From: Klebsormidium nitens
Taxonomy: Eukaryota; Plantae; Klebsormidiophyceae
DNA length: 64,000 bases
Assembly (NCBI GenBank): GCA_000708835.1
Contig: DF237202.1
Location: 57,540-121,539, forward strand
Direction: 5' to 3'
Part shown: piece after piece, positions 1,082 to 13,001 of the stretch
How the letters are laid out: each line of letters begins with the position of its first letter
Position numbering within the stretch: the stretch's first letter is position 1
The notes under the pieces: model-generated
Database searches by the model: none
What the model was told of the DNA's origin: nothing
Seen by the model: the letters and a program-made list of their open reading frames with translations, nothing else
Position numbers and translations under genes: made by a program

Positions 1082-1864
1082 CTAAACTTGCAGTGCCACG
1101 TGTTTACCAGACAACCCAACACCACGGGCAGATTCCACATCGGACGGTTCCGAATGCATACTATCACCAAATCAATTGAATGACGCCAGCACATTCTTCT
1201 CTGATTCATTGGCTATTATATTCACTCCTTTCCACGTGTTCGGCGTGGTTTGCCGGCCGGCCAACACTGTGAAGTTTGAACCGTCCTCGAAGCGGTCGCA
1301 AGTCCGGTCACTCTGGTCAGTCGATCAACAGTCACTTCATCACTTCGGTCTGCAGGATGACAGGATGGTATGAACGCGGACAAAGCCAGCAAAAAGAGCA
1401 ACAAAGGAGCCGTGGCAATGTGCACAACCATGGCCCCAATCAACGGAACCCGCCGGGCGCGACTTCCGATCAGCCTCTGTATTTATATACGACAGTTATT
1501 CATGATCTGTTCATCTATAGTTAAATTGAATATATTTTGGTGCTTCCTTTAGGCAAGCTCGTGAGGCCTTGATACCTTAGCATCAATATTGGGGTCAACT
1601 ACATGGCCGCGCGCGCGGCGGCGACGTCAACAATATAGCTAAGGCGCTATAGACAGTACGTGAGAATGGCTGATTCGCGCACTAAAGTAACGGTGGCAGA
1701 AGTATCGATTTTCTGATCAGGAGGGGACGTGGGGCGCAGCCGAGACAATGGGCTCGCGGGCGCGATCAGCCGGTTATACTCAGATCGGAACAGCTTGAAC
1801 TTATAGAAGCCGAGCAACGTATTCACTCACTCACGAACTCAGTCACACTCAAGAACATTTGCGC

Positions 1865-2624
1865 CTACATTGTACACACTGCAAAACTCAGCGTCTTCAC
1901 AAGTTGGGCTTTGCTTTGCAGAGTGTGGAAAAGATTATGCACCACGACGGTACCCCCCGCACCACCCGGCAGTCCACTGGCCGGGCGCGCAAAACATACT
2001 GAACGATCTCGATATACCATGCATGTCTCTGGTAAAATATAGGCCGGCATGCGATGCGTGCATACTAAATAATCTTGCCGAGTCTTCGGTAAAAGAAAGA
2101 GGATATTCTGGACGGTGACGCTGACGTATTCAAGTCGGATCCACCGTGCAATACTCAACGACCGTCGAAGGGTTCCCGAGAGCTGCGGCGCTATGAACGG
2201 ATCCCAGCTGTCCACATATGTAAATGCTGAGCGCTAGATCGGGATTCTGTGTTAGTAAAGCAGTGGCGATAAGGTTCGCTGTTTCGATGATGCAACGAAA
2301 ATGCTGCTCGTCAGTGATCGACGGCTCTGTCGACTGGCCCGGACTTCGAGGCAGCACTTCTGCTTCACAAAAAATCGGAACAATCCGAGGACTCGGTTGA
2401 AGATTGGACTCAGCCGATATACCGTCCCTTGCTGCTATGATGTATCTGTGGCAAAAAGCGAACGGGCTTGGGGAAGGAGTCTCGGTTGAGCTCAGGCGAA
2501 TTGTTGAGTCGCTCAACAATGAAGGCGGCGCACACGGTACCAATACTTTCAGCTTACTTGAGAACGAATGATACCGCTTCTCTTTGCGCACTTCGCGCAG
2601 GAAATTGTTGAAAATATTCGACAC
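1865..2624 (-). pseudogene. Intronless, stop-interrupted coding-like remnant (possibly TE- or virus-derived)
   Basis: A 164-aa ORF (2130-2624) continues past a single TGA in the same frame (IRQRHRPEYPLSF...MFCAPGQWTAGWCGG). An overlapping 116-aa ORF lies in another frame. No clear splice sites and no recognised family. Confidence 0.2.
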
Positions 2625-2972
2625 AAAAACTGTCGGTAGCTAGGACGGAGTCATGGCCCTGATCCAGTGATCCAAAAGTTATCTATGCTTACTTGCTCTC
2701 AGTAGACTTCAAATTCGTAAACGGGTATTTATGAATACTTACAACAAATGCTTTGGGCCTAATCGAGGCCCTTAATGCTGTACAGCTTGATGCGGTGAGC
2801 CCAATCAAGCAAACCGCTTCCCACTATTTAATCCACTTCGCTGATTTCGTTTCCCGGGTGCCAGTGCCGCGGTGTTTCGTGTTGTAGGCAGACCCCGGAC
2901 ACCGGTGCCTTGCCCAAACGGCCCCAATCTCACTTTTTTACGCTGCGAGCCACACACTATATATCCTATCAC

Positions 2973-5900
2973 TTACTCCAAAACAAGAGCCGCTCTCATC
3001 TTCTTCGCCTTGTTCCAGCACTCCCCCAGAAACCGCCCATAAACATCCAAAACCCCAAACGTCGCCTCCGCGAACTGCGGCTCGAGCCGCGGGTTCGCTT
3101 CGACGAACTTGTCGCGCAGCTCCGCGCTCTCGGCCGCGTGCGTGACGTCAAGGACCACGTGGTGGTGCAGAAACGTCAGCTGGGGCAAAAAGGCGTCGCC
3201 CAAAAGCGCGCGCACGCGCGCGATCATGGGCGCGCCCAGGACGAGCGACAGCTGCTCGATCGCGCTCTGGATGGCGACCTGGGCGTACGGCTGCTTGGAC
3301 GCGATGTACCTGTAGAGTGGACGTCCGAAAATGATATCAGACTGACCGGCTCAGGCTTTGTAAAGGTGAATCTGAAGGGAAACGTCTGCGAATGGCAAGG
3401 CCCTGGGCGTACGGGTGCTGAGACGCGATGTACCTGCAGAATAAACGTCCGAGTATGCTTTGGAACTTGATGGGCGCGCTTACAATCTATCAATTATATG
3501 AAGACGTACTAACGAACATCTCCAAAATGGCAACTTAGGCGCGTGTAACTGCTTAAATCCTGATCACCTGGCTAGCAAGCGTCCAAAGAACGAACGGAGA
3601 ACACGCCCAACTGTGTCGACCATTTAATGGAGTCAGATTGAAGTCGATACCGGAAGCAGCATGACGGGAACTCGTCAGCGTTCACTACTTATCAGTGCAG
3701 CCAGACTAATAGAATACCGAGTCTCCGTGGCAGGAGATGGTACGATGGGACGGTCTCGTTTTCAGCACGCAAAACGAGTCTTTGTTTTTCCGCTTGGCAC
3801 CTTCTGAGGGCAACACCAGTGCCAGTGCTCCAAAGACCGCTCTGGCCGTGAGACGTTTTGTAACGTGGGCTCTGCTCAAAGTGGCAATCTAGCGCAGAGC
3901 GGCGATCTTGACACTCAGGGCTCTTCCTCACGGCGCGTCTTTCCTCCTACCCAAAACCTTCCAATCTCGTGCGCAAGTCTTCCTATGCAAACAGAATAAG
4001 CAGTTCCTAGAGGAATGGGCAGTCTCCGTCCCGTAGCTCACCTGTCATGCAGCTCGTCATAGTCGTGCACGCTCTGGAAGTACGGTGACGTCAGGAGCGC
4101 GTCAGCGGACATGGGGCTGCCGGGGTGCTTCGCGTTCCAGGAGGCTGACAGCTTCGTGACGTCATTCCGGAACCACCGGTCGTGGCCGGCTTCTTCGAGA
4201 GCACCCTCAACCAGGCTGCGGGTGCGAAACGAAGATATACTATTGACAGATTTTATCGAGATAGCAAAAATGCGAAATACATGTTTACGTTCCGAGTGGT
4301 CATTGATCGGCCAGCTTGGCGGGTGGGAATTGGGTCGAGGCAGTAAAGAAGTAGCGAAACGGAGATGCGTTGAACGATGCAAAGTCAGGCTGGGGCGGAG
4401 TGAATGCCAATCTTACTTTAACGCCTCAAAATACATTCAAGGTAACAGGTTCTGGAAACAAGTCGTCAGGAAAACAGACTTCAAGATGACCATGCGGTGA
4501 GCTTGATGATAACCGAATGGAAAGGATTATGGAAATAATCGCTATAAAGTATATGCGATGATACTCGGGAGCCTATCTAGAAATTGGCAAACAAAGGCGA
4601 CCTGTATGACAGGGATCAGTAGAGGAAAGGTAGACTCCGGTTTGCCGTCTAGAACCTCACTCTGGTCGTTGTGGGCAAGCGGAAAAACTTCGTCAAGGAT
4701 CCATGAAAGGGCAGAGACCTTGTAATTCGCGGTTGAGGTGTAAGCCAGAGCTTGACAAAATTCTGACGGCTGTCAGATTGCAGTCGCTTGCGCCAGCTTA
4801 AGTGCCAAGGGTGCCAATATTATCGGAAAGAAGTCATAGGACTTTTGGGCCCCTTAACCAAGGACGGTTTTGGGCAGGTTAAAATTCTGGTTATCTGTCC
4901 AGTAACCAGACTTGGACGTTAAACAGCTTTGGAGCAAGGTTGAAACCCGGTTAAGCTGTCCAATAACTCAAGCCTCAAGTTGGTTACCAATCTGGTTAGC
5001 AGCCAAAACTTCCTGTGAGTGAAGCCACCTTCTCCTATGTCCTCAGGTTCATCAAATTTGGGCAGAGTGAGAAGACGACGGCTTACCTGTTTCCCAGTTC
5101 CTGCAGCATCTCGACGTCACTGCCTGCGTTAGCAAGCGCCAGGCACTCCTGCCCCGCTCGCCGAATCCACATCTCGACCTGCGCAGAAACCACCTCTGGA
5201 TTCCAGCCCAGGCCAAAGTCGAAAAGACTTGGCAGATCCGGCCCTAGGCTGTGTACGTGTAAGCTCACTCACAAGTCATGAGCCTTTCAAAAGCTCGTGT
5301 AATCATTGAAGTCTGTCTGATTCTGAGAGCGAAGCAGACCACAACAGGGATCCCTCCCTACCTGCTGCACTGGCAGCCCTTAATGGATACAAAGACAGGT
5401 CATGATTTGCCTCCCTCCCCATCTCATCTGCTGTAGGAGCAGTCTTTTGGCTGGTCACTTCAGGTTCCTGCTGGATAGTCTGGAAGTCAGAAAGAAGGTC
5501 GAAGGGACGAATGAGTATGCCAAAATATTGTGTGGCTCACCTTTTCAGTCATGCCAACTCCTTGGGAGCAGAACACAAGGAAGAACAAGTGCAGTAAGTC
5601 GGTGTCATCGCACGCCGCCAGCTCCTGAAGCTCCGGAACCGCCGCCAGGGCCTGGGGCGCGGCCCTGTAGTCCTGTTGGGATGCTGACGTCAGCGCGGCG
5701 GCGACGTCTGTGGTTAGGGCAGCGGTGGCCACATTGCGCTGCAAAATATTGTGGATGGGCGTAAACGGAGGAAGAAATGTTCTCAAAATGCGTTTGTGGA
5801 GTCAGCGTCAGTTGAGTGTGGATCTTTGCAGAAAGTGCGCACAGAGAAAATGTGATGCTTTTGGCCCTCTTGATTGCGAGAACAAGCTAGCTGGAATTGC

Positions 5901-6699
5901 TTTGCTGTAAGGCAGCTGGCGGCAGCAGCCTAGCAATCAGTCCGGAACTTTGATATTGTCAGCTGCTACTATGGCATCGATTCTGAAATCTGACTCACTG
6001 CTAGGCGCATCAGCCCCTACAGAATCATGCTTCAGGTCCAGATTGGAACATGTTTACGAAACCTGCTTCCAGACACCAAACCACTGAAAATCTCATTGAC
6101 AAAAAACTCCTGACTGCCCAGAAATTACCCACAGCTTTCTGAAACTACTCAACCAGATCTGACTCTCAACAAAGTTGAGAAGCCTCAACCCACCCATGAG
6201 CTCGCACACCCTCTTGGAATACAAGCTTTGGGTTCATGGATAATTCAGCATAATAGAATTCTGTGGCTACCAAAATAACCTTTTCATTGGTGGGCAATCA
6301 GCTGGGGCCTCAAATCACATTTCGTGCGACAGTCTGATGCAGGCATCGGGGGGAGCAAGCAAAGAATGTCAAGCTTACCATATGGCACCCATTTATTGGA
6401 GTCTTATCCAAATCAACAACAGGATTCAGAAGCTTGGTTGTCAAACAGGTTCGACTTACCTCTGGCCTCCTTCCGTAGAATGTTGCTGCAGGCCATTGAC
6501 GAGACTTTTCTGACGGGCCTAGCTGTCTTCCGCAAGATCTGAGAAAGGAAGGAAGCAATGCTGGGCGTGCTGACACCGCTCTGACGACACCAGTGTGAGA
6601 CGTTCTCATCTGGGCTTTGACCTGAGTTTCCTCAAGTAGAGGGCCAATCACCCACTGATGGCAATATTGCAATCTGGTCGTGGCCCTTACTGCCGCCAT
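2973..6699 (-). CDS. Heme-oxygenase-like diiron oxidase (HDO / iron-containing redox enzyme superfamily) with N-terminal transit-peptide-like extension, ~346 aa
   Basis: Exons 6699-6460, 5738-5541, 5178-5087, 4215-4042 and 3309-2973, all GT-AG and phase-consistent (a possible 18-nt microexon lies at 6016-5999). The spliced product reads ...SQGVGMTEK|VEMWIRRAGQEC...ELGNS|LVEGALEEAGHDRWF...ELHDR|YIASKQPYAQVAIQSAIEQL...FLHHHVVLDVTHAAE..., giving the E-x2-H, E and H-x3-D-x2-H ligand pattern of HDO diiron enzymes. Confidence 0.85.
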
Positions 6700-8489
6700 G
6701 GTACCCGAATGCAGCTTGGGTCGATTGATGCTGGCGTTGCGCCCTTTTTGCTTGTTCAGTTGACCTCCGGAGCCTCTGTGATTGGTTTCTGAGCTGCTGT
6801 GTGAGGAAGAGTGCGGGACGGCGAGGGAAGGGGCTGGGGGATTTCCACTAATCAGCTTGAAAACAATTTGGGCTTGTGACAACGATACGGACTCTTGGGT
6901 TGAGAGAAGGGTTTGACTTTGTGACAAGAAGCGCCGGCCAGCACACAGCTTACGTATGCCGATCGATTCCTGAGCTGGCGCTTGTAACTAGCAGGTTGAC
7001 TGGAGAAGGCACGGGCCGTAACCTTGTAAGCCGGCCAGCTTGGAAGCCTGCTGGGGTCTCACCCTCCGCATGCGAGCTGCCTCATTTCATTAGATAGCTT
7101 CATTTGATGGAGTTTGCAGCAATATTGTCTCGAGAGTGACCGCCCTTCAAGGGCCGTCTTGAAGTTGAAAAGCCGCCTCACAGCATGCATTTATTACTCG
7201 GCTTTGCTCATCCAGTTGCGCCATGATGTCAGGATGGTGCTTGAGCATCTTAGATTCTCAGAAATGGTTATATATAGGAAACCCGGTTATTAAAGTGTCT
7301 GTAAGAAGGGGACTAAGATGACTGACAAAGCCCAAATCCAATTTCTACCTGCTCCGCAGCCTTGCCCAGCCTAAACCCGCTTACTAATTCCACCCGTCCC
7401 TGGACGATAATAGCTTACTATAACCTACGATTTTAACTATGGTTGAGCTACGGGGATTTTGGAGTACACCATGCCCATGATGAGATCATCCTCGGATGTA
7501 CTAAGCCGGAATTCAATGCGAGAGCCGGACAACTCGACGAAAGTTCCGGATGGGATATTGTTTTTCGATGCCGCCACTTTCACATCGTTGCAAAGGCTGC
7601 AGTGTCGAGACTACGGAACTGAGCAAGTTTCGATGTCGAACGGTAACACTCAGCACTGGTCGGTCTGCGCGCCTCTATAATGCATCCGCTGCTTACGTAT
7701 TTATGAACGAGCTCATCATTGTTGTTGTCGCCGCTGAATGATGAGCACACTCCAGAGTGAGTCCAGACAGGTTCTTTGCAGGGCCCAGGCCCCGGCAGGG
7801 AAGGTGTGGCTCGTATTACTCCGGGGTCCAAAAATCTTCAGATCTGAGTATATATGCAGCGACTACAACTCACAAGCACACTGGACTACAACTCACAAAC
7901 AGTTCCAAATTCCAATCTAAGAGTTGCCAGTCCAATATGCATTTTGGACAGTTCTGAGTTTTGAACGATTTGGACAGAGGCCTTTTCTTGTAAGCCTCCG
8001 CAATATATCCAAACGAACAGAACATTATAAGTGCATGCATCCTGCTGCGATCATCTTCGCTCCCAGAAAGTTCGTTTTCAAAATAAGTACACCGGCATTC
8101 CGAGAACAAATGATTGCAGAGGCATCTTTCAGATCCCGCACCACAGTTTGAAGTCTACGGTACTACTGGAGTCTCAAAGGAGGGCGTGCGCCGATGGCGC
8201 CGCCAGCACAATGCCGGGCCAGCTGCAGTGGTTGATCAAAGCGCGTTTGACTTAAGAACCTTTTGACTTATCAATACCAAGTATAAGATGAAAGGGTGTG
8301 TGCGATGGGCAGTCAGAAGGCGCTTTCCCACAAAGACACACTTCTCAAGCATAAACTTTGAGTCACTCACCTTCAACGCAAGCTGGCGCTGCGTATTAAT
8401 CGCAAGGACTGCGGTGGGCCAGCATTATGATCCGTCTTTCAGCTGACCAATTCTCCAGAAAGCAGCTTTCGTTGTGGGGGGGAACAACA

Positions 8490-11133
8490 ATGATGGCTGC
8501 CAGCTGCAACCTTCTTGCGGCGAGACCGCTCTCTTTGTGCAGCTGGTTAGATCCAAAGCCTTCAACACGTCTGGTTACCGCAAACCCCATCGATCAGCTC
8601 CTGAGCGCAGGGGCCCTTCGCCGTGGCAGGTTAGCAAAACGGGTTTGCACAAATCAGACACGGTCAGCAGGCGGCTTGCACGGCATCAGAGGTTCGTTGG
8701 GTGGGCTAACCCTTCCGGCTTTTGACCCAGAAACCCCAGGCCCCCCCCTGCTTGACCACGCCTTAACACCGTCCCTCCAACATCAGCAGTCTCTGGAGAT
8801 TCTTGAACGGCCGCCCGAGATCTTCATGCCCCTAACTAGAAAGGTTTGCCCCAGCTTTACTTACAGATGGGCTGTGCTCACCGATGCCCCTGGCATTGCA
8901 AACCTTTTGAATCGCCCAGAATATTCCAATCAACTGAAGCCCACAAGCGTCTGGGAGATTGAAGCGCGCATTCTGGGGGGGTCACTTTTGGTGGCGGAAT
9001 GCCCCCACACGGGCCAGGTTTTGGCGACAGCGGGGTGTGACGTGTTTGCTGGGGAGCAGGGGAGGGGGCGAAAGGAGACGCTTTTGAGAGATCAATTCCA
9101 GTGCTGGGGGAAGGATGCTTTTCAGAATCTGGAGGAAGCGGGATGGTACCATCCCACAAGCATGTGAGTCCTTGGACAGCTAACAAATCTTGTTCAAAAG
9201 ATCAGAAGACAAAAGCTTCTGTTCAGAATATCAGAAGACAAAATTCAGCAGTACTTTGCACTGATCCTTCCACAATCTTGATGAGTATGACCTACATTTC
9301 AACCAAGCCAAAGATGATTTTGTGGTAGCTTCTAGACACTTTCCGAAGCACCCTGCTGTCAACATGAGGATGAAGCTTTGGCTCTGGTTTGTGTCGATCA
9401 TCTGCTATGGAGGCAGATCCGAGAAACACAGGTTGATTCAAGGAAATTTGCAGCTGGAAACTTAAGGGGTATGCCTAGGCTTGAGCTAGGTGGAAGTGAG
9501 ACAGCATACTGGCATTCCAACTACGCCAATGTTGGCCCTATCAAGAGCCATGAAACGTTTTCTTTTGCTAAGTTACAGTGCCTTTCCAGTGAATTACTTC
9601 AAGAGGTTAGAGATGGGGGTTAAAATTTAGTTACCCTGGCTTGTCAATGACATCTTGCCTCTTGACTTGGAACGCGCTTTAATAAGATAGAAAAAAAAGC
9701 AAGGGGGACATCTTTTGTCCTGGCACAGCTCATCTACACTTTTGAACCTTCCAGGCAAACATCCAAGAAAGGCACATTCGTGCCTGACCAAGGCCCAACT
9801 TTCCAAAAACTGCTCGAAACTGTACACACCTCCCAGCTTGGAGATGGGCCGCTCTCGGGTGCATTCACAATGATCTACAATTCCAGGTGAGTCCCCCTGC
9901 CTCAGCCTCTCCTTTTATAACATCAAGAGAGGCCATAGTTTCATTCAAATGTCTTTTACAAGGGTCGTGCTGCAAGCCGCCATTTCAACCTTTGTTCCAG
10001 CAAGAATGGGAAAGGAGGTTGTCGATCTCTGGCTGAAACTTAGACTTAGTGAAGCTAAGTGGGCAGAAACAGCGGATGGCTCAAAAGGATTTTCAAAGGA
10101 CAGGGTTGGGCTCTGACGTGAATGCGAAAAAGTAAAAGTCCGGCTGGATATTCACGAGAGTTCCTCGTTGCCACCAGCCGCCTCAGAAGCCTCCCTACTA
10201 GATGCACCCTTTACCAGGAGACTCCTTTGACGGTCTGTTTGTGAGGGGAAGAAATTGCAAGAAACTCAAAAAATATAAGCTGCGCAGAAGACGACGGCTT
10301 TCGTATTGAGTCTCGCTAGGAAGCCTCTCATAGCAAGTCTGTGATTCTGCATCCCCGAACACTGACCCCCTTCTCTGAGCCCCCAGAGGCTCTCTATAGC
10401 TCGCTGAAAGCTGAAGCCTACGTTCTCTTTGGTTTCCCAGCTGTGTTGTACTTCCTCAGTTGGTGGGTACTCCCCAGGCGGCCAGACTGGTGCGTCAGAA
10501 CCTCAACTTCACAACCGACAAGGTGGGTCGTTCTGACCGCACATGTTTGCTAAGGTCTACTTCAGCAATTAAGGTTTGAATTTGTCAAGTCCGAAAGTCT
10601 GGTGTTGAAGGCCTTGAGGAAAACGTTTTAGGCTCTGCTTGGAGATCAAAAGTTGTAGTTGGAAAAGATTTGTGTTCCGATCCGTTGAGTAGAGAAGAGA
10701 GAACCACCCAGGCACGTCTGGTTGGTGTCGTTTTGAAATCTACAGAACGCCAAAGCTTGTCCGTCGCAGTCAATGTGCAGATGGGTACTTGTTTTGAAAG
10801 CTGTGATTCGGTGTCCTCATATTAGGTTGACCTCTGTGCAATCGTCTCTTTCGGTCTTCTTTCTTCGCCAAACCTGGTCTCTTTGAATAACCACAGGTGA
10901 TCAGCACCTTGACCAGCGCCAGTGGACCTCATGACGTCACCCATCCATATGACGTCACGTGCACGGCTTCTTCCTACCGTCAGCCGGTGTACTTCGTCAT
11001 CGTCAGCGCTGCAGCAGAGGCGAACCGGGATAAGCTGTTTCACTTGCACGCATCGGCGATCCCCCCCTTCCTGGACAAAGTGCGGAAAGCTCTGGGCGTG
11101 ACGACCAATCCGCTCGACTCAGAAGAAGTGTGA
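8490..11133 (+). CDS. GNAT-fold acyl/acetyltransferase-like protein with transit-peptide-like N-terminus, ~374 aa
   Basis: Exons 8490-9163, 9755-9886, 10441-10522 and 10897-11133 are phase-consistent (donors gtgagt, gtgagt, gtgggt). GNAT-like elements: FTYRWAVLTDAPGIANLL (beta1-alpha1), LLVAE...QVLATAG (beta2/3), YNSCVVLPQLVGTPQAARLVRQ (motif-A-like). The first ~60 aa are Ala/Ser/Arg/Leu-rich and nearly free of acidic residues. Confidence 0.65.
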
Positions 11134-11879
11134 GCTTTTAATTCCTACGAACTCCGTTTCTTGGAAATAGGAAAGAGTTGTCCTGCTAGGGCCGAACGCG
11201 CTCGACTTAAAAGAGAAAAAAGCTTCAAACTTTTACAAACTTTATGAAGTCCGCTCTCCGACAAATAGAGAAAGAACCTTCCAGCAAGGGAAACCGCTCC
11301 AACCAAGCCGACTTAGGCGAAGTGCGTTTTTGAGGTCTTACCCTCCGGTCTGGAGCCTTCAATTCCGCCGTGAATCCGGTCTAATTCCGGTCAGGCTTGC
11401 TAGCGTCTGATTCTTTCTTAAAGCAACATCGTGCAGAGCCCAGCAGAGCAGTGTTGATGAACAGCATTCGACACCCCTCTGGCGACCCATCTGCTGTGGT
11501 TTGCGCTATCAAAATTCGGTGTGTCAGAGGAGAAGCAAGGACGGGGTTGCAGTCCAAGGATGTTTGTCTTTAATCGGCTGTCACGCCGGAAAGCGCAGGT
11601 GTTTGGTGGTTGTACGGAGGTCTTGCTCATGAGCCCCTGAAATTACGCTCTGCCCTATATGCGGCTTAAAGCCGTGTGCGCCAAGCTTTGTCAAACTTCG
11701 ATGGGCCCTTCTAAGCACACGGGAGAATCACGTACCCGTGAGTAACGCACGAGCGTTCCTTCCGACCAAGCTGGGTGAAGAAGCTCACGCTTGTGGACGG
11801 GCTTTTCAAAGCGCAGGTTTTTCTCTCCTTTTCCCTCCGGCTCAAAAATGACGTTCTTCCGTACTCTGGATGGCTGCAG

Positions 11880-11991
11880 GCTACCCCCCATTCCGTGCGC
11901 CATACTGCGGCACACCATGCCCAAGACCGACGTCCCGGCCTTCGCATTCTTCAGCTACGTCGCCCTGGACCCCATCGACCATAAGCGCTTG
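11880..11991 (+). other. Isolated exon-like segment (LPPIPCAILRHTMPKTDVPAFAFFSYVALDPIDHKRL)
   Basis: Acceptor ctgcag, donor gtacgt and strongly GC3-biased codons. No partner exons could be linked. Confidence 0.3.
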
Positions 11992-13001
11992 GTACGTGCG
12001 CTCGGGAGCCCCATAAGCTCTCAGCTCGTTTCGGTAGCGCCGTAAGCCATCATCTTCATATATGTCGGGGGGACCGTTTACATTTTGGGGCGCCATAAGC
12101 CATCCATTGGCGTAAGGGCCTTATCGCTCTCACCTGGTAATTGGGGTGCCATAAGCGATCACCTTCTATCGCGGGCAGACGCTACAAGCTCGCTAGTACA
12201 GTCGCGCAGGCGCAGAAAGCTCCCACTTATGTAGAGGAAGCCGTATATATGCACTTGGAAGCAGACTAATGTTCGACGGGGCTACAACAGGGAGAACGGG
12301 CTAAGGAAAATGAATGGCCCTGATCAAATATCCATGTCATTTGAAATAAGGCAGAAGGTATAGGGCCAGTGTATGTGTATGGGAGGGCGGTCGAGTCCTT
12401 TAATGAAGTAGAGGGTGCTTTTGCACAGACTTGACTCACTGCTGGCAATCAAAAAGGGGATTAAAATGTCAGTGTGAGCAGTAGACTATGAGAAGGGCTT
12501 CGTGAAATATACGGTCCTTGGGTTAGAGTGCCAGCCCGAGCCATAAGTGGCGCAATAGCAGCAGAATAACAAGATAAGACGTAGAACAACGTATGTACAG
12601 TGCACCTCAACTTGTCAAGCATCACTCAACTACATATAGATATCCTGTTAATCGAGAATGCAATCCAAATGTGTTTGAGAGCAACGCAATCGCTGATTTT
12701 AGACTCAGATGGTAAGAACTCAAGGACCCTACATCGAGAAATCCGCATGGCTGAACCAGAGAACTTGTTTCGCATTCAGGCGCATGATTGAATGAATCTA
12801 TCTCGCGGCGGCCATTGAATTATTCTGCATTTGCTTTCCATACCGAGGCCCGGCCTGATATTCAGGAATTTATGATAAGCTTGGAAGATTGGTATGTCGA
12901 GCCGCGCAAGCTTACTGTCTAGCTGCTGACATCTTGAGACGGTTCACGTGCACCAAGTTGAAAGCGGTAGCTGTGCCTGGATTGGTAACTAGTCAGAGCG
13001 T

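Follow-up and report, generated by a model that had tools for sequence, protein, structure and literature searches.

Do two neighbouring, divergently oriented genes of a streptophyte alga make up one biosynthetic unit? The question is raised by a locus on Klebsormidium nitens scaffold DF237202.1 (GCA_000708835.1), analyzed as a stretch of 64,000 nucleotides that we call the window and to which all coordinates refer. This is eukaryotic DNA, rich in introns, with a GC content of ~50% that is higher in the exons. It carries two divergent, intron-containing genes: KFL_002530080 on the minus strand, whose product resembles heme-oxygenase-like diiron oxidases/oxygenases (HDOs), and KFL_002530090 on the plus strand, whose product has a fainter likeness to GNAT acyltransferases. 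We label the plus-gene product P0001 (349 aa) and the minus-gene HDO product P0002 (306 aa). An earlier note on this DNA had placed the starts head to head 1.8 kb apart and proposed a co-regulated, possibly co-transferred pair acting in the plastid. The distance is right: the starts at 8490 (+) and 6699 (−) lie 1791 bases apart, and 8490 is also the start of the public model. As to the pairing, we favour, at a probability of about 0.5, a bacterially acquired HDO beside a separate, lineage-specific neighbour, most likely not an inherited operon. Among natural-product enzymes, HDOs form a fast-growing family, of which no characterized eukaryotic member is known to us.

The minus-strand gene encodes, judging by sequence and predicted structure, a functional-looking HDO of bacterial type. 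P0002 came back from a representative search seeded with the last HDO exon, and scores 34.1 bits against PF14518, above the gathering cut-off of 28.9. The scaffold annotation gives a PF14518 product of 306 aa on the strand opposite to P0001 (window 2973–7103). An AlphaFold model based on a 42-sequence alignment (pLDDT 85.7, pTM 0.81) has an all-helical core, with the first ~45 residues disordered. Foldseek ranks 3dde, CADD, UndA, AetD, PolF and BesC for this model, the first three at probability 1.00, and a PDB profile search returns 3dde at 8e-05, followed by CADD/pABA synthase. Six residues (E145, H148, E213, H245, D249 and H252) are invariant or nearly so in the 42-sequence alignment. The alga keeps all six, in the ligand pattern E-x-x-H, E, H-x-x-x-D-x-x-H, and in an alignment with CADD, E213 and the H/D/H residues fall on CADD ligand columns. 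E211, a nearly invariant neighbour of E213, is Ala in the algal protein. Family score, fold, ligands and bacterial relatives bear out the HDO identity given in the earlier note. Characterized HDOs share a 3-His/3-carboxylate dimetal site pattern (review PMC13108848). By analogy with the superfamily, the algal enzyme would activate O2 at such a site and might oxidize a small amino-acid- or acyl-derived substrate.

The relatives of this HDO are largely bacterial. Its last exon has 141 representative matches at E<1e-3, typically ~245 aa long, and sampled cluster look-ups lead to Myxococcota and Pseudomonadota proteins from metagenome-assembled genomes. Related loci, collected with an 8-sequence alignment, include 80 from bacterial genomes that span at least seven phyla, with Gamma- and Alphaproteobacteria, Cyanobacteria, Myxococcota, Acidobacteriota and Actinomycetota among them. 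Closer relatives were found only as gene fragments on four short eukaryote-like contigs (L085–L088; 1.6–4.1 kb, ~51% GC), which have the same intron positions as the algal gene and end short of where the plus-gene neighbour would lie. L085–L087 are 65% identical to the algal HDO in amino acids and L088 is ~88% identical in nucleotides. From their sequences, these fragments are HDO orthologues in Klebsormidium-like algae. The HDO is therefore a bacterial-type gene that resides in the algal genome and is inherited vertically. In a quick, weakly supported tree its branch is very long (2.58) and has no supported sister; a bacterial donor cannot be named. The distribution, rather than a rooted tree, indicates that the HDO was most likely acquired from bacteria by an ancestor of Klebsormidium-like algae. 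The acquired gene, from an uncharacterized and otherwise bacterial subfamily, would then have gained introns and a presequence-like N-terminal extension.

What accompanies this HDO in bacteria? The closest full-length homologues, P0143 and P0145 (37–39% identity), each have a PF13444 protein of 238–239 aa on the same strand, 27–38 bases downstream. All open reading frames (ORFs) of 83 bacterial loci, three near-identical metagenome loci (L002–L004) among them, were searched with an HDO profile and with a jackhmmer profile seeded with this neighbour. A GNAT is linked to the HDO in 46 of the 83 (55%), fused to it in 26 and adjacent on the same strand in 20, where it lies downstream in 11, upstream in 8 and is ambiguous in 1. 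The 37 loci with no linked GNAT are mostly from Myxococcota. In Pfam, the bacterial partner scores above the thresholds of Acetyltransf_5 and Acetyltransf_1 and matches FeeM and autoinducer synthases more weakly; its neighbours in the ESM Atlas are clusters of FeeM, N-acyltyrosine-synthase and exosortase-acyltransferase type. Database representatives also show the reverse domain order (FeeM-HDO in P0056, GNAT-HDO in P0091). In Nostoc, Symploca and Amazonocrinis (L010–L015, ~1600–6800 per locus), an aromatic amino-acid ammonia-lyase, an AMP-binding ligase, a FeeM-like GNAT and the HDO form a co-directional operon; by analogy, it suggests an aryl-acyl donor and is reminiscent of aryl-homoserine-lactone synthases. 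This comparative evidence argues strongly for joint action of the HDO subfamily and a FeeM/LuxI-like N-acyltransferase in bacteria. A review of HDOs (PMC13108848) never mentions a GNAT or acyltransferase and does not describe characterized HDOs with a FeeM-type GNAT partner; literature searches on HDO with GNAT or N-acyl amino acid synthase also gave no description of this partnership. A search on the two algal locus tags found nothing relevant. The bacterial partnership is thus real and, apparently, undescribed.

Several features of the bacterial loci deserve separate mention. The HDO-GNAT fusions are single ORFs in 26 loci within L029–L084 (e.g. L036:5899–7389). P0011, P0056, P0078 and P0091 are fusion proteins too, with P0056 and P0091 in the reverse order. 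The HDO-GNAT ORFs occur in Acidobacteriaceae, Rhodoblastus and other bacteria and, with the reverse-order proteins, look like independent fusions of the same domains. In one cyanobacterial locus (L014), another HDO copy follows directly on the four-gene operon. P0041 and P0069 (~810–845 aa) combine an N-terminal PilZ (c-di-GMP binding) domain with a C-terminal HDO domain, and GGDEF-EAL genes flank the HDO-GNAT pair of L002–L004. In Myxococcota loci that lack a GNAT (L021:225–1649, L031:2274–4004 and 11 others), a conserved protein of ~475–595 aa is encoded directly upstream and overlaps the HDO start. It has no Pfam match and is a possible alternative HDO partner.

Whether the algal neighbour belongs to this partnership depends on what the plus-strand gene is. 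It is a separate, expressed, spliced five-exon gene, seen only in K. nitens. P0001 was retrieved at 100% identity with exon 1 and is named 'hypothetical protein' in the database. The RNA evidence consists of contigs from four runs of one study, mapped to 5300–11200; the run type 'RNA' is a guess, and GT..AG joints are present. Exons derived by hand at 8490–9163, 9755–9886, 10441–10522 and 10897–11129 match P0001. Exon 1 codes for the N-terminal extension and for the part of the protein that marginally matches a GNAT. The RNA-like contigs confirm three GT..AG joints: 9163>9755 and 9886>10441 in two or three runs, with the joints of exon 3 seen in runs X2, X3 and X4, and 10522>10897. Exon 4 ends at the donor AGAAGT/gtgagc. 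Beyond 11130 the contigs continue in a loose end of 255 bases whose sequence is found at 11881, just after a ctgcag acceptor, which fits a fourth splice. The gene therefore has a fifth exon at 11880–12045, given by the loose-end consensus of X2 and X3, which supplies the real stop and fits the C-terminus of P0001. The gene end at 11133 proposed earlier has to be moved accordingly: the transcript splices from 11129 to exon 5, and the stop codon at 11131–11133 is intronic in contigs that reach the junction. A further RNA-like contig (8356–8576) overlaps the 5' start region. The public model of KFL_002530090 excises 8630–8866 as an in-frame intron. Contig X1 is unspliced over 8686–9054 and GC there is exon-like, so the longer exon 1, with 8630–8866 retained, is at least one real isoform. 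The annotated 349-aa P0001 may thus be 79 residues too short and miss the beginning of the first predicted beta-strand.

Is P0001 a GNAT? Two word-indexed searches for homologues returned only P0001 itself, Pfam gave no match for the protein or its exons even at E<=10, and NCBIfam gave none at E<=0.01. In the ESM Atlas, all 20 nearest clusters by features (score 0.93) are N-acetyltransferase-like, and 10 of 10 structure rows are GNATs (TM by row 0.50–0.68). The Atlas model itself is weak (pLDDT 0.52, pTM 0.55), and the overlap of 125–133 out of 256 features is no more than chance or distant matches usually give. A single-sequence AlphaFold model is unusable (pLDDT 33). For the residues encoded at 8835–9161, the best PDB match is the GNAT 4h89 at E 0.037 (E 0.22 for the whole protein), in an alignment that spans beta-strands and the R/Q-G-x-G loop of the acetyl-CoA motif region. 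There, the acyl-CoA binding motif A of GNATs (Q/R-x-x-G-x-G/A), which follows strand beta4, corresponds to QGRGRK in P0001, aligned to RGRGVG in 4h89, with Lys rather than Gly/Ala at the last position. A first placement of motif A in exon 3 (QLVGTP) was dropped, the only statistically supported alignment being the one that puts the motif in exon 1. On this weak evidence, a GNAT fold is probable for P0001. The earlier GNAT call finds no echo in Pfam or NCBIfam and is not confirmed; it rests on the Atlas neighbours and the marginal 4h89 match.

The same data allow a different reading, that P0001 is no acyltransferase but a young protein specific to this lineage, with a likeness to GNATs that low-confidence models have produced as an artefact; its pairing with the HDO would then be meaningless. 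The empty family and homologue searches, the low pLDDT of both models, the chance-like number of shared Atlas features and the weak codon-position signal of the gene all fit this reading. We nevertheless hold it to be unlikely, with every Atlas feature match and structure row pointing to a GNAT, the sole near-significant PDB match being a GNAT as well, and an ORF that stays open over five exons, three of whose junctions are confirmed as joints and the fourth indicated by the loose end. At best, then, the plus-strand product would be a very divergent, long-insert GNAT-fold protein.

A GNAT fold would not by itself make P0001 the bacterial partner. We built a partner profile from 50 aligned partner domains, fused or adjacent, of the bacterial loci. 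P0001 scores −1.6 bits against it with hmmsearch and reaches a probability of 0.3% with hhalign. BLASTP of P0001 or of exon 1 against the bacterial partner found no similarity, and phmmer of P0001 against 4350 ORFs of the bacterial loci gave no match, the fused HDO-GNAT proteins being unmatched as well. A partner-like segment was not found elsewhere in the 64-kb window either. Loss of similarity on this scale is not seen among bacteria: in pairs of loci whose HDOs are 35–40% identical, as the alga and bacteria are, the partners keep 24–35% identity and are easily detected by profile. The Atlas neighbours of P0001 are Acetyltransf_1/7/10-type clusters, with no overlap with the Acetyltransf_5/FeeM neighbours of the Frankia partner. 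The arrangement differs too, the algal pair being divergent and the bacterial pairs co-directional or fused. Looking for bacterial homologues as neighbours, as the earlier note had suggested, therefore gave a split answer: the HDO does have a linked GNAT in bacteria, and P0001 is not detectably that GNAT. The profile scores and the orientation do not support the claim of a co-transferred pair.

These results bear directly on the possibility that the algal locus is a relic of a co-transferred bacterial operon or fusion of HDO and N-acyltransferase, inverted to the divergent arrangement, with an acyltransferase that changed so quickly as to be recognizable by its GNAT fold alone. Such a relic would be in keeping with the frequency of the bacterial linkage (55% of loci, with the GNAT upstream, downstream or fused in both orders), with the exclusively GNAT neighbours of P0001 in the Atlas and the 4h89 match of its N-terminal half, and with the very long branch of the algal HDO itself. 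It is hard to reconcile with a P0001 that shares no sequence or profile similarity with a partner family that stays recognizable in bacteria at equal HDO divergence, with Atlas clusters of another type than those of the Frankia partner, and with an orientation unlike every bacterial arrangement seen. We regard such a relic as improbable, and co-transfer of both genes in any form as equally so. The most far-reaching version has a streptophyte alga capture a bacterial HDO and N-acyltransferase module, split and invert it, add introns and organelle presequences, and make an oxidized N-acyl or aryl-acyl metabolite or signal, with an acyltransferase diverged beyond sequence recognition; this, too, would be a surprising outcome. 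Since the plus gene is separate and, as far as sequence can tell, not descended from the bacterial partner, the head-to-head pair is most likely not an inherited operon.

A last way to a unit runs through the 5' ends of the two genes, and the HDO end requires a closer look. Four minus-strand exons of P0002 carry the HDO core: 5738–5541 (end of the N-terminal extension and first core helices; GC3 0.74, orthologous exon in L085), 5178–5087 (beginning VEMWIRR), 4215–4042 (E-x-x-H ligand motif EEAGH; phases fit, conserved in L085, L087 and L088) and 3309–2973 (P0002 residues 196–306, with ligand E213, the H245/D249/H252 helix and the stop; PF14518 E 5e-05 alone). Together they rebuild the conserved bacterial block GVGMTE-VE-WIRRAG, across the junction into the VEMWIRR exon, and show a strong coding signal (GC3 0.72–0.86 in core exons). 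The previously proposed stop at 2973 is correct. A candidate exon at 5362–5479 (EANH motif) was rejected because its phases clash and bacterial homologues run GVGMTEK directly into VEMWIRR.

Upstream of the core, two versions compete. In the first, the minus-strand ATG at 6699 opens an 80-codon exon (6460–6699) with an open frame and a GTAAGT donor. The public model starts at 7103 in an alternative first exon (minus strand, 7063–7103; MKLSNEMRQLACGG), taken from the P0002 sequence and the gene span, and splices into 6538, thus using only 6460–6538 of the exon just described. That exon has a flat codon-position GC profile, with GC3 0.48 versus 0.72–0.86 in the core exons, and no conservation of it was found in the orthologous contig L085. 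RNA contigs over either 5' version are lacking in the four RNA-like runs. Of the earlier start at 6699, the ATG and the donor stand, whereas RNA and homology lend it no support and the public start is at 7103. Either start leaves about 60–100 residues ahead of where bacterial homologues begin.

The last HDO exon shows a small tandem duplication. Its acceptor junction (3278–3333) is repeated upstream at 3402–3457 (minus strand); the copies are 56 nt long, share 84% identity and lie 124 nt apart. In each of them CAG is followed by GTACATCGCGTC, encoding RYIAS-x-x-PYAQ, and the upstream copy ends in a stop. The close relative L088 has a single copy of the junction; its last HDO exon is interrupted by ~360 nt (L088:1477–1837) absent from K. 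nitens, either an extra intron or an insertion. Farther downstream on DF237202.1, an amidase gene is also annotated.

The pair could still be a unit if it was assembled within the alga, the transferred HDO having inserted or been kept beside an unrelated host GNAT-like gene with which it now shares a bidirectional promoter, an organelle and a pathway, much as in the earlier note but with no co-transfer involved. The genes are divergent, and the shared 5' intergenic region (6700–8489), in which no long ORF was found, measures 1.8 kb, or ~1.25 kb when counted from 7103 to the transcript seen from 8356. Between the genes lies one more RNA-like contig (7809–8056, run X4). It could stem from a non-coding transcript, from a 5' exon missing in the annotation or from carried-over DNA. 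The N-termini of both proteins are poor in acidic residues and positively charged (D+E 4–5%, net charge +4 to +8), as against D+E of 9–14% in the mature parts; the earlier description of acid-poor extensions is correct in this respect. Such N-termini are compatible with presequences, the HDO 5' exon being uncertain. An in-house assembly could also draw on the acyltransferases with which bacterial HDOs of the same family work. Against this, the four RNA-like runs that yield spliced P0001 contigs have none on 5300–7100, the only part of the HDO gene compared and one where contigs cannot show absence, which speaks weakly against tight co-expression. The presequence of the HDO is as putative as its 5' exon, and compact algal genomes contain many divergent gene pairs. 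We therefore rate assembly within the alga as a long shot, and a functional link of any kind between the two genes as doubtful. Plastid targeting, co-regulation and co-transfer remain conjecture, since P0001 has no partner homology, the orientation differs from that in bacteria and the HDO 5' region has no contigs.

We thus return to a bacterially acquired HDO with a separate, lineage-specific neighbour, to which several points are opposed. Since HDOs of this family pair with GNATs in bacteria, a GNAT-like gene beside one of very few HDO genes in the genome is unlikely by chance, at 1–3% by a rough estimate that was not computed. The GNAT assignment of P0001 is weak, and 'GNAT-like' may be wrong in either direction. 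Little can be read from the lack of HDO contigs in the four RNA-like runs. The donor bacterium is not identified, and a bacterial origin rests on distribution and not on a rooted tree. Lastly, with the HDO branch as long as 2.58, a partner may have diverged beyond detection likewise.

The locus matters in two ways. With its introns and its conservation in Klebsormidium-like algae, the HDO makes a clean candidate for a gene acquired from bacteria near the base of the land-plant lineage. The bacterial HDO-GNAT module, itself uncharacterized, is a strong and repeatedly reinvented partnership, as the fusions in both orders and the cyanobacterial lyase-ligase-GNAT-HDO operon illustrate. It also provides a substrate hypothesis for the algal HDO, namely N-acyl or aryl-acyl amino-acid-type products.

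Among known systems, FeeM/NasY-type N-acyl amino acid synthases and LuxI-type synthases (PF21926, PF13444, PF00765) are the home of the bacterial HDO partner, and none of these models is matched by the algal P0001. The nearest counterpart of P0001 is the Acetyltransf_1-type GNAT 4h89, the best PDB match of its N-terminal half; the E-value is only 0.037–0.22, and the fold of P0001 would be broken by long inserts and spread over five exons. The algal HDO has counterparts of its own. UndA, BesC, AetD, PolF and other characterized HDOs have no sequence-level match to it and Foldseek E-values of 0.005–0.1, but share its fold and the 3-His/3-carboxylate dimetal pattern. CADD, the self-sacrificing 4-aminobenzoate synthase (PDB 1rcw, 8va9), differs in its folate-pathway genomic context and is only 12% identical (E 0.005), but has the HDO fold and aligning carboxylate and H..D..H ligand columns. 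The closest counterpart is Sden_3740 (PDB 3dde), described as a 'TENA/THI-4 domain of unknown function with heme-oxygenase-like fold'. It is just 14% identical to the algal HDO and, having no assigned function, offers no clue to the substrate, but it is both the best profile match (E 8e-05) and the best structural match (TM by target 0.78), and the two proteins have the H-x-x-H-E-x-G-H and H-x-x-x-D-x-x-H helices in common.

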